From NCBI GenBank assembly GCA_964234715.1, contig OZ174280.1: a stretch of 64,000 nucleotides of DNA; one strand, written 5' to 3'. This stretch comes from Podarcis melisellensis (taxonomy: Eukaryota). The position numbers and the translations under genes are program-made. The notes beneath the pieces were generated by a model that was not told where the DNA came from, searched no databases, and saw only the letters and a list, made by a program, of their open reading frames with translations. This document shows, one piece after another, positions 11,301 through 24,523 of the stretch (positions are counted from its first letter, which is position 1; the number at the start of each line of letters is the position of its first letter).

Positions 11301-12096
11301 GCAATTTAGGCCTCAGGATTGCAACACTGTCACACATGTTTGCCTTTAAACACTTGGATAGTCTTTGATGGCTTCAGCAGGATTGCTAATAGGATCAAAG
11401 TGAATCACTTCCCTTAAGTGTTTGCAGGATGTGGACCCTGGTTGGCAGGATAAAGGCCATTTTATAGATTTATCATTCTTGCAATCACTGACTGTGACTT
11501 TAGAGTCATAAAAGACTAAAATAATGACTGCTTTGTCCAATAACATGTTGTATTTGGTAAGGTTTTATCTTCATTTCATCCCTATAGAGAACTTCAGCTC
11601 ATCACTGCCTTTTGACAGGAAAAGGGAGGAATGCTTATGTTTCTAGGAGTCTACAAGACCTGCACACACCACTTTTTGTTAGCCCTTTTTATTATACATG
11701 CACACGGCAGGTAAAATACTAAGTATTTCACATAGCTTAATAAAAAGCCAGACTTTCCACACATGCCAAGAACAATTTACTGGATGTGATTCTAGCAACG
11801 TCCAGTGATACCTATAGCATTTCTTAGAAAACTGGTGCCTCTCTCAATGGAGACATCAATTTATCAAGAGGGGTACCTTTATACAGTTGCACCTTGTGTG
11901 CAAGTGTGCACTGCTGGGTTGTTGGTTTTCTTCTGCTTAGCCTCACAACTATTATTGCTGAGGGTTCTTAAGGTTCAAAGTTATGAAGCTGCTTATACCT
12001 GGGAAGTTACTTTATTGGTGCAGGGCACCCAAAAAGGCAGCTTGCCTTCTACAGAAAGTTGGAGTGGGTTCCTGCACTTTTTGTAATAGAAATAAG

Positions 12097-12247
12097 CCGT
12101 GCTTTTTTTCTTAAAAAATGTTTATGGGTACTCTCATTTTCCTACTCATATTGAAATACTGACCTGACCCTCAATAAGGCCAAACTTAGATTCACAAAAT
12201 GTTTAAGGGTATGCGAACCCCTGCATCCCCCCAGAAGAAAAGCACTG
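12097..12247. mobile_element. Non-autonomous hAT-type DNA transposon (MITE)
   Basis: Terminal inverted repeats CCGTGCTTTT...AAAAGCACTG with an 8-bp target-site duplication GAAATAAG/GATATAAG (7 of 8 identical). Confidence 0.75.
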
Positions 12248-12429
12248 GATATAAGCTTGAACTGTCTGTTTACAACGGTGGCAATATCGGGGCTGCTAAT
12301 TGCAAAGTTATCTATCCAAATTTTGTTAGCTTGCCATTTTCCTGCTCATTTCTCAAAGTCTCGGCAAGTTAAATTTATGCTTGGGGAGCAGACTGCATCT
12401 TGTCTGTAGTTGTACAGGAATGCATGTAC

Positions 12430-13280
12430 ACGTATGAACACTTAAGACACAGGGAGGCAGCCTTGATGTGACGACAGGGGTGTTGCACGCATTTAGCAGT
12501 GTCCCTGTTTCCTTCGCCGACTTGCCGGAGGATTTGCTTGCGTAAAAGAATGTACCTTCCGTGCTTCTCTTCAAAACACAGACGTCCATTAATAGGGCAG
12601 ATTTTGGGGGAGACGCCGAGCGACGGGAAAGGAAGTGCTGCTTTGTGCCGGGGACGTTTATAGCCCTGCGTGGGGATATGGGGAGTGAGCAGTTGCGTCT
12701 CGGGAATTGGGCTCCTGGTGGTGTTAGAGGAGGGGCTGAGGGAGATCGCATCAAGCCTAGTGGTATTTGCGGCGCGAAGAAGAAAGCGTGGTAGCAAAAG
12801 CAGAAGTCCCTAGTCCCAGACCGCTCTTTGCTGCCCCGTTGCCATGAGAACAGCTTCCTCCCCCTGAACTCTCACCCCGCGCAGGCCGCGGCGACGCCTG
12901 GTCACATGATCGGAGCTAACATGGCGGCGGCCGCTGTTATGGGGAGCTGATTGCAGGTGCCGGGGCCGTTGCCTGCATCCGCCCTCATCCCCGGCCATGC
13001 AGAGCGAGAGAAGGGAACCCGGTGGTCGAGAAGAGGTGCGAGCGGGGCGCGTCTGAGAGGCCGGAGCGTCTCTGGGGCCGGAGCCGCCAGGGCAGGAGAT
13101 GGGGCTTGTTTACATCCGAACGGGGGTTGGGCCATCATCCCTGAGGTGGGAGGGGTCTGCTTATATCCATATCCATAAACTTGGAGGGTGCATTTTTTTC
13201 ATTTAAGGACGAGGCATACCCTCCTCCCATCTTCGGGGCCGTGCAGAACGGCTTTGTTTATCTAAGGATGACACGGGTCC
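12430..13280 (+). promoter_or_regulatory. Intragenic CpG island / alternative internal promoter of RNF220
   Basis: The only strongly GC- and CpG-dense stretch in an otherwise CpG-depleted window. It contains an RFX X-box-like GTTGCCATGAGAAC (12838-12851), an E-box GTCACATGA (12901-12909), a YY1-like AACATGGCGGC (12918-12928) and a candidate donor CAG|gtgccg at 12956/12957, about 850 bp upstream of exon B. Confidence 0.8.
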
Positions 13281-13801
13281 CTGGAGGGGAAAGACCAGGA
13301 GGAGGTTGTTTATTTTTGGTATCTAGGAACTAAGAGCAATACTGGTATACTTGTTCATTTGTAAGGAGATTAATTTATAGCTAAGCCAAAGCTAGACAGC
13401 AGGCTGTAGGCTGCTTTCCCCCATACAGTAGTCTTGTAGGCTGAGGAATTAGGGAGTGGGGAAGTGGTATGGAACCTTGCAAGCAGTTGGGATGAACTAC
13501 ATTTAGGGTGCTGTGGATATGTATATTTCGACAACAGCCAAGTCAGAGGAAATGTGGGTGTATTTGTGTTTTAAGAAGTTATCTGGGGAAGATTAAATTG
13601 TGGTATTGGTTTGAATTGGTAAATATAGGCAACACCCAAAAGGGAAGTTTGTCAGGTAGATGAGAGTGCTGTGGTGGATTTTTCTAATCTAATTCCCCCA
13701 TACACTCCCTAAGACTGCTTCTCAGAATGGGGTAAATAACTCTGTGGTTTTCTCACCAGCAAGTTCCTAATGCTTTTTTGCTCCTGATCTTATCTTAACA
13801 G

Positions 13802-13844
13802 ACCTTCTTGCGAGTGAGAGCAAACAGACAGACCCGGCTGAATG
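13802..13844 (+). CDS. RNF220: RNF220 coding exon B (43 nt): TFLRVRANRQTRLN(A)
   Basis: Acceptor tcttaacag|ACC; donor ATG|gtgagt; phase 0 to 1, continuing exon A in frame. Confidence 0.95.
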
Positions 13845-15439
13845 GTGAGTGCAGAAGAAATCCTGTACCATTTTCCCCCTTGTTCCAAGATGAAGACTTT
13901 CATTATCTGGGCCTAACAAGTATAATGCTTCCTTTCTTTACAAGATTCCTGAACTAAATATGCCCCAAAGGGTTAAAGCTTCAAATCAATCATTTGTATT
14001 CCTAACACGTTTTGTTCCTCTCTGAACCCTGTCTTAAGTTGCTGCCCCTGGGTTACATTTATGTAGGCCTCCCAATGACATTGCTTTTCAGGCAGCTTGC
14101 AAACATAAAATATAATGCGGTAAAACAACAATTGCAGGAAATTATTGTCAGCAAAGGTAAGAGAGAGAATCATTTACTCAACATTATTAAAAACACACCA
14201 TGTGGAAGCAGTAGATTACAGTTCAAAACTTTAAATAATCACAGATCTGAAAATGCTTGGGAGAATTATTTTTTTTAAGTATTTTACCTGGCATTGAAAT
14301 GGCCATAAAGAGGTGGCAAGCAGGCCTCTCTGAGGAGGGCATGCCACAATTGGGGTACCACCACTTATTGTTAAATGGCCTGGTTAATATTGCAAAGGAG
14401 AAATTATCAATGCCAAGTAGAATAATTATTTTACTGCTTGCCATTTTAAAAATAATGATTTACTTATGGGTGTAATGAGATTAGTCTTTTTTCCCAATGG
14501 CATTGTTTTCACTTGGTTACCTGTTATAATCTCCAGCTGTCAACAATACCTGCTTACAGCTAAAAAAATACATACAACTATAATTCCTGTTTGTTTCATT
14601 TATTACAACTTTTTTAAATTCCACCTTTCTTTCAACACCCTCCCCCAATGCTGTTTTGAAACAATGTGCAGGATAAAAGCCTTTAATATCTCACCTGGTT
14701 ATATGGACCTGATACCTCAGTAATTTGCAACTTGGAGCTGAACCTAACTATTACTACTGTGTATGTAATAGCAGATTCCATAATTTTTGGTCTTAGAATA
14801 GACCTGCCTTCAGAGAAGTAATTAATTCAAGATGTATTTTGTAATTTTTATCCAATAGTACGTAAAACACAGTGTATTGTCACTAAGTAGGAATAATTTT
14901 TCAAACATTTTGTATAGTGACCCTTTATTTTAATTGATTCTACTTCCACTGCCAGTGAACAGAAAAACATGTATTTTTATCATCTTTAATTTGGTCAAGA
15001 GTAAAGATTATGAAAATTCATCCCTGAGAAGTTAAGAGCAACTTTAAATTATCCTGACAGTGCAGGAGGAAAGTTTCCTTGAATTCTTGAATGCCAGCAA
15101 GATTCAGAGCTGTAACATACTATGTTGGATAAAAGGAGAGAGCTCTTGAATTAATGAGGACTGTGCACTATGTAGTGAATACACGTGATCTGACTTTCAC
15201 ATACACAACTACAATATATTTCTGCTACTGAATAATTCTAGGATATGATTAATGAATACAATTGCGGTATTCTATTGATCATCTTGCAAACATTTCCTTA
15301 GGACACTTGGAGCTATTACTGGAAATGATTATAGCAGAATGCTAATATTTTTCAAAAAGAACATGATCATTTTTTGAAAGCAGACCTAGGTTTTGCCAAA
15401 TATATTGTATGTTGGCTGTATTTGGACATAATGCTAAAC

Positions 15440-24401: not shown

Positions 24402-24523
24402 CTCGGATTGGAAAAATGAAACGGAGGAAGCAAGACGAAGGACAGGTATGTCCCCTCTGCAGCCAACCTCTCTCAGGATCCGAGGAGGAGAGGAGTAGGC
24501 ATGTCGAACAATGCCTTGCAAAG
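24402..24523 (+). CDS. RNF220: RNF220 coding exon C. Short form 24402-24445 (ARIGKMKRRKQDEGQ); long form to 24523 adds VCPLCSQPLSGSEEERSRHVEQCLAK
   Basis: Acceptor ttcctcgcatag; two phase-0 donors, CAG|gtatgt (24446) and AAG|gtagaa (24524), 78 nt apart with no stop between them. Confidence 0.93.

Follow-up and report, generated by a model that had tools for sequence, protein, structure and literature searches.

A cluster of upstream ATGs in RNF220 of Podarcis melisellensis most probably lies in the 5' leader of the deltaN-RNF220 first exon

A CpG island within an intron of RNF220 holds, in close succession, three ATGs in one frame, a TGA and a CAG/GT. The arrangement was found in a stretch of 64,000 nucleotides from Podarcis melisellensis (the window), where a first-pass annotation had taken the CAG/GT at 12956/7 for the donor of an alternative first exon and had thereby placed both the ATGs and the TGA in register with RNF220. 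Read in that way, the TGA would close a coding exon, and it could be the end of an upstream ORF (uORF) that forces re-initiation at a downstream ATG, a codon recoded by readthrough or selenocysteine, or a nonsense change that silenced a once-coding exon. The locus raises the question of which donor is used, in which frame the ATGs and the TGA then lie, and where translation of the resulting mRNA begins.

Results

Locus and features

The host gene is RNF220, on the + strand, as the translations of its colinear exons match Pfam PF15926. The candidate first exon lies in the intron upstream of the exon that encodes TFLRVRANRQ, between exon A and exon B, and its CpG island is the probable internal promoter of the short RNF220 isoform (Table 1). 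Direct reading and translation bore out the letters of the first-pass annotation: ATGs 12906, 12921 and 12939 share one frame (1 in 9 by chance), the TGA is followed by TTG CAG and the GT, all of this lies in the CpG island, and 12906-12956 translates as MIGANMAAAAVMGS, a stop and LQ. The window contains a run of N at 543-751. All four RNA runs reached very high depth at 12074-12295, up to thousands in the contig run, and the reads there came from both strands and had many different loose ends to either side. The source is a SINE-like interspersed repeat, expressed and situated in the RNF220 intron, that bears no relation to the first exon.

Table 1. Features of the RNF220 locus in the window, with the state of each in Crotalus where compared.
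Feature	Position	Strand	Description	Crotalus
Exon A, end	6329	+	..HHSDRYQ/gt; direct reading	
CpG island	12551-13200	+	sole one in the 64-kb window; GC >0.55, CpG o/e >0.65	
Proximal promoter block	12838-12904	+		57/70 alignment columns identical vs 26/65 just upstream
E-box-like CACATGA	12903-12909	+	holds ATG 12906; at or near transcript 5' end	kept
First ATG	12906	+		kept
YY1-like motif	12918-12928	+	AACATGGCGGC; holds ATG 12921; only exact match in window	
Second ATG	12921	+		kept
Putative uORF	12921-12950	+	9 codons and TGA (14 codons from 12906); ends 46 nt before ATG 12997	same length; 3 residues changed, 1 synonymous difference
Third ATG	12939	+		GTG
uORF stop	12948-12950	+	TGA	TAA at the same codon in both species
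Donor GT first proposed	12957-12958	+	CAG/GTGCCG; weak, without +4A and +5G	
Coding part of first exon	12997-13035	+	AUG and 12 codons, in frame with exon B	4 codons differ, 4/4 synonymous; 13 residues identical
Intron	13036-13801	+	GT..AG, 766 nt; removed in RNA	
Exon B	13802-13844	+	TFLRVRANRQTRLN and G; common to long isoform	
Exon C	24402-24523	+	short end 24445; long end 24523, adding the 78-nt zinc-finger insert	
Secondary AUG	24416	+	within exon C; opens MKRRK; M33	

The first exon is spliced at 13035

Over 12000-14200 we compared the window with RNA from two relatives: three raw-read runs (X21, X22 and X23) from a close relative, organism B, and one contig run (X1, tentatively taken as RNA) from another relative, organism A. 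These are individuals other than the window's own, and they differ from it at ~3-6% of sites in flanking non-coding DNA. The only joint listed onto exon B runs from 13035 to 13802 (printed as 13033->13800, "cut +2"). X23 supplied 6 reads for it, with 3 starts, X22 supplied 1 read and X1 a contig of depth 29.8, which makes 7 reads and one contig, all from relatives. The first mate of every junction read mapped to the minus strand, the pattern that a standard stranded library gives for + strand RNA, and read depth ran on across 12956 as far as 13035. The same junction is found in natural mRNA contigs from a squamate (L007) and a frog (L001). The first exon ends at 13035 and is spliced to exon B at 13802. 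At 13819 in exon B, all runs of the two relatives carry G for A, a synonymous difference (AGA to AGG, Arg).

From 12956, by comparison, no joint was listed in the three raw RNA runs or the contig run, where listing began at 3 reads, so that one or two reads from this donor would go unlisted. The idea of an alternative first exon that feeds exon B from an intronic CpG island was upheld, and the donor assigned to it was not. Because the donor in use is 13035, 79 nt past 12956, the frame moves by one and neither the ATGs nor the TGA are in frame with RNF220; the "in-frame TGA" arose because the leader had been paired with the GT at 12957, the first GT after the ATG cluster.

The main coding start lies at 12997

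For the listing of AUGs and ORFs, and for that purpose only, the three exon references were concatenated by a local script; the homology searches were run with single exons or with proteins that had been found, never with a joined spliced model. ATG 12997 (context GCC ATG C) is in the RNF220 frame, with no stop up to the junction and TFLRV beyond it, and the exon-specific N-terminus is 13 residues long (MQSERREPGGREE). A profile-free search with exon C led to P0001, a fragment with an MQS... N-terminus followed by TFLRV, and when the C-terminal ORF of the contig that carries it was used in a word search, many annotated proteins of ~300 aa came up, whose N-termini we aligned (alignment A2). In this alignment, homologous N-termini that end in ..GREE and continue with TFLRV are seen in lizards, snakes, frogs, mammals and fishes: MQSERREPGGREE in the lizards, MQSESRGGRREE in the frogs, MPRARSG..GGREE in the mammals and MEEELQSNGKRE in the fishes, each followed by TFLRVRANRQ. 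A word search with residues 1-90 of P0052 returned no further leader-bearing fragments.

P0052 is XP_077784918.1, the 303-aa isoform X8 of E3 ubiquitin-protein ligase RNF220 from Podarcis muralis, a computational RefSeq model, and the lizard form is known from such models. P0052 contains the exon translations of the window as exact substrings (residues 1-13, 14-27 and 29-68), and the later exons agree with it as well; at the protein level the two do not differ, every exon translation tested occurring in the right order. The 303-aa form is annotated in about a dozen squamates (Lacerta, Tiliqua, Crotalus, Pantherophis, Pseudonaja, Candoia, Gekko, Paroedura, Rhineura and others), and the models from Podarcis muralis, Lacerta, Tiliqua, Crotalus, Pantherophis and Gekko come without an annotated uORF.

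In mammals, deltaN-RNF220 (isoform 4 in human and isoform 3 in mouse) is transcribed from an intronic promoter through exon 5a, which has its own TSS, and it is the ubiquitous form in mouse tissues (PMC12296455; Choi et al. 2025, Mol Cells). The lizard form resembles it in a probable intronic promoter, in a first exon that carries an AUG and is spliced to the TFLRVRANRQ exon, in a second AUG at MKRRK, in the 78-nt zinc-finger insert and in a length of ~300 aa. In the mammalian protein, the annotated AUG and a conserved secondary start, M38, give proteins 4a and 4b (PMC12296455). The lizard form differs in having 13 exon-specific codons, not 18, with MQSERREPGGREE in place of MPRARSG...GGREE, and because of this the second start is M33 here and M38 in human. 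The first-pass annotation had counted on ATG 24416 as a start 63 nt after the TGA; the MKRRK start stands, with M38 as its mammalian counterpart (PMC12296455), and the 63-nt spacing would hold only if 12956 were the donor. N-truncated RNF220 isoforms do exist, as it had stated for mammals.

We conclude, with high confidence, that deltaN-RNF220 (isoform 4 in human, where this exon is "exon 5a") has its promoter and first exon in this region, with the main AUG at 12997, and that the ATGs and the TGA belong to its 5' leader. This first exon is already known and annotated.

Several features of the downstream exons can be added here. The optional 78-nt segment at 24446-24523, which codes for a zinc-finger-like VCPLC..H..C motif, forms part of the 303-aa short isoform as annotated; its counterpart in the mammalian gene is the 146/224-bp exon-7 alternative, and mammalian deltaN-RNF220 likewise includes the segment (PMC12296455). 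The last three bases of exon B (13842-13844) are an out-of-frame ATG, which opens an ORF of 6 codons across the B/C junction (13842-13844 and 24402-24419; MLGLEK and a stop) whose TGA overlaps ATG 24416 (ATGA). The same arrangement is present in the mRNA contigs from the squamate (L007), the frog (L001) and zebrafish (L005). This short ORF is probably a by-product of the conserved L-N-A-R-I-G-K-M-K codons, and it stands in the path of any ribosome scanning to M33. In the frog contig (L001:334-366), 16 extra bases after the long exon-C donor shift the frame, with the result that two ORFs are called; these bases may come from an unproductive variant or from the use of another splice site.

The frame from 12997 is conserved in Crotalus

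Genomic loci of Crotalus adamanteus and C. tigris (L008 and L009) were aligned to 12838-13045 (alignment A4). In Crotalus the CDS begins with the orthologue of ATG 12997, has the same GAG/GTGCGA donor as the window after 13 codons and continues in exon B 706 nt on. Judged by the codon differences in Table 1, the frame from 12997 evolves as coding sequence and the ATG cluster does not. As to whether the elements of the cluster are conserved, ATG 12906, ATG 12921 and the position of the stop persist in Crotalus, whereas ATG 12939 and the TGA itself do not. Between the window and organism A, we saw 0 differences in the 139 nt of 12895-13033 and 41 in 858 nt of flanking non-coding sequence (Fisher p = 0.004). 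The 25 nt after the uORF stop (12951-12975), which include the CAG/GT, are perfectly conserved between lacertid and rattlesnake, more tightly than the uORF; a minor donor could be the reason, as could a transcription-factor site or an element of the leader.

A bird mRNA contig (L004:1-104) has a different first exon, which ends in ..GACGTCATG and is spliced straight onto exon C, and because of this direct joining the mRNA can encode only the MKRRK-initiated protein. The last 12 bases of that first exon (TCTGACGTCATG) have no match in the window with one mismatch allowed. A Tauraco genomic contig (L006) begins 130 nt before exon B and so does not take in exon 5a; its positions 131-175 are exon B-like sequence without the 9 nt for T-R-L.

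The transcript 5' end and its motifs

Raw-read RNA depth was zero over 12296-12887 and began in the 12888-12961 bin in all three runs. Depth arithmetic on single reads in X21 and X22 gave starts near 12916-12921, and the contig of X1 extends back to 12710, possibly because it derives from pre-mRNA. From the first bin with depth, the single-read arithmetic and the 5' ends of L001 and L007, we infer a TSS at ~12890-12915, these signals being too sparse to fix it. The conserved promoter block contains a further upstream ATG at 12844-12867 (MRTASSP and a stop; GCCATGAGAAC, identical in Crotalus). Only in a transcript that starts upstream of 12844, such as the reach of the X1 contig to 12710 might suggest, would this ATG open a uORF.

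Both of the ATGs kept in Crotalus lie within recognizable motifs. The frog mRNA contig begins at CATGA, which matches the E-box-like CACATGA of the window. The first-pass annotation had pointed out that ATGGCG overlaps a YY1-like motif; the match is exact and has no second instance in the window. The motif, AAnATGGCssC, recurs at position 3 of L007, at position 14 of L001 and in Crotalus, and in the two mRNA contigs it lies 2-13 nt from the 5' ends. YY1 motifs were reportedly found by Xi and colleagues in 2007 to be enriched just downstream of TSSs. A sense-strand AAnATGGCGGC that lies in a CpG island with no TATA box, near the point where the RNA evidence begins, resembles a YY1 downstream promoter element, for which a place about +10 to +30 from the TSS is expected; here the matching sequence is kept from lizard to frog and is absent from the zebrafish leader. 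That leader (L005) has no YY1 motif and no alignable similarity, and other uATGs are present in it. A local alignment of the lizard and frog leaders (12905-12934 against L001 1-30) has 22/30 identical positions, and as ~3% of shuffles reach its score it is marginal and at most suggestive. The most economical reading would be that the YY1 site accounts for the presence of the second ATG and the E-box-like element for that of the first.

A putative uORF in the leader

Since its stop precedes the main AUG, 12921-12950 fits the definition of a uORF, and it is out of frame with the main ORF. The context of uAUG 12921 is strong (A at -3, G at +4). The L001 and L007 contigs include the orthologous uAUG, and reads fall in the 12888-12961 bin. 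The uORF has 9 codons in the lacertid window, 24 in the squamate L007 and 10 in the frog L001; its stop lies 46, 83 and 99 nt, respectively, before the main AUG, and the offset of the uAUG to the main AUG, modulo 3, is 1, 2 and 0. The three peptides have only MA(A/P)A in common, the residues that the motif encodes. An upstream AUG start, short length and a stop before the main AUG are kept in the lacertid, the viperid, the other squamate and the frog. Of the first-pass proposal that a uORF forces re-initiation at MKRRK, the leader uORF is retained; its placement in frame and MKRRK as the sole start are not, there being two starts, 12997 and 24416.

There is no mention of a uORF or a YY1 motif in PMC12296455, and a literature search on RNF220 and uORF found nothing relevant. 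The conserved uAUG within a YY1 motif and the short uORF that follows it in tetrapod leaders are a small unreported detail.

Alternative readings of the cluster

The first alternative is that the ATGs are pure by-products of transcription-factor sites (YY1 and E-box) with no translational role, most TSSs lying at or after them or else the ATGs being too near the cap for recognition, and on this reading our judgment is evenly poised. Lizard, L007 and frog share only the letters of the motif, besides the MA(A/P)A that these spell, the third ATG is lost in Crotalus, and the RNA evidence starts only 5-16 nt ahead of the YY1 ATG in the case of L007 and L001, and in the 12888-12961 bin in that of the raw reads; YY1 motifs are known to be enriched immediately downstream of TSSs (PMC8384218). 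Against this, the uORF is short and ended before the main AUG in four of four tetrapod leaders, its stop was kept through the change from TGA to TAA, and the uAUG context is strong.

It is highly unlikely, in our view, that 12956 is a genuine minor alternative 5' splice site, whose mRNA would not contain AUG 12997, would have the uORF stop in register and would give only the MKRRK-initiated (4b-like) protein. The CAG/GT and the ~20 nt that follow it are perfectly conserved between lizard and rattlesnake, and rare use would be compatible with a list of joints that starts at 3 reads; however, the whole leader is conserved, so that conservation is not specific to this GT. The listed joints do not include it, and the annotated models and mRNA contigs in lizards, snakes and the frog all take the downstream donor. 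The site also scores poorly: a rough donor matrix, which relies on general consensus frequencies and is thus approximate, gave -0.07 bits for 12957 and 2.5 bits for 13036 (GAG/GTGCGA), a difference of ~2.6 bits.

That the cluster formerly coded for an N-terminus and lost this role through a nonsense change is extremely improbable, its one attraction being a coincidence of frame. The true coding start lies intact 46 nt downstream and is under purifying selection, the uORF peptide resembles no vertebrate N-terminus in alignment A2, and a stop is present in the snake, the other squamate and the frog at varying positions; the same holds for the change from TGA to TAA in Crotalus, the mostly nonsynonymous change in the uORF and its varying frame and length across species, which tell equally against recoding. 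Recoding of the TGA by selenocysteine or programmed readthrough into an N-terminally extended protein, suggested by the same frame coincidence under a splice model that the RNA does not support, is so improbable that we rule it out, because Crotalus has at that codon a TAA, which cannot encode Sec, and because the observed splice puts the TGA out of frame; uORF residues moreover change freely (3 nonsynonymous against 1 synonymous), the frame of the uORF with respect to the main ORF changes from species to species, and a scan at Rfam gathering thresholds gave 0 hits, SECIS included, in the window, outside which the RNF220 3' UTR lies.

Discussion

The arrangement at this locus is best explained as follows. 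Transcription would start in the CpG island, at ~12890-12915, and the first exon extends to 13035 and joins exon B at 13802. AUG 12997 opens the main frame, its 13 exon-specific residues followed by TFLRV... to give the 303-aa protein, with AUG 24416 (M33) as a probable second start site, as documented in mammals. The three ATGs and the TGA would then sit in the 5' leader, ATG 12921 within a YY1-type motif and ATG 12906 within an E-box-like element. Once transcribed, the cluster would form a putative uORF of 9-14 codons ending 46 nt before the main AUG, and, with the uAUG so near the cap, many ribosomes may skip it.

In its layout the leader recalls uORFs of the GCN4/ATF4 type, as a short uORF, 9-24 codons long, stops 46-99 nt ahead of two in-frame starts, measured to the first; it differs in having a single cap-proximal uORF, and the likeness is one of sequence layout only. 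We consider it unlikely that the uORF opened by the YY1-embedded uAUG sets the choice between initiation at M1 (4a-like, nuclear) and at M33/M38 (4b-like, with a different localisation) through leaky scanning or reinitiation. If this were true, one DNA element would couple transcription, through YY1, to the choice of deltaN-RNF220 proteoform.

There is no coding exon at this locus that an in-frame TGA closes, and the value of the analysis is mostly that of a correction. What takes its place is the start of deltaN-RNF220, a ubiquitously expressed short isoform recently shown to matter in mammals, and the conservation of its promoter and first exon, the junction included, now extends to squamates, frogs and fishes. 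The uAUG in the YY1 motif and its uORF could bear on the balance of the deltaN proteoforms 4a and 4b.
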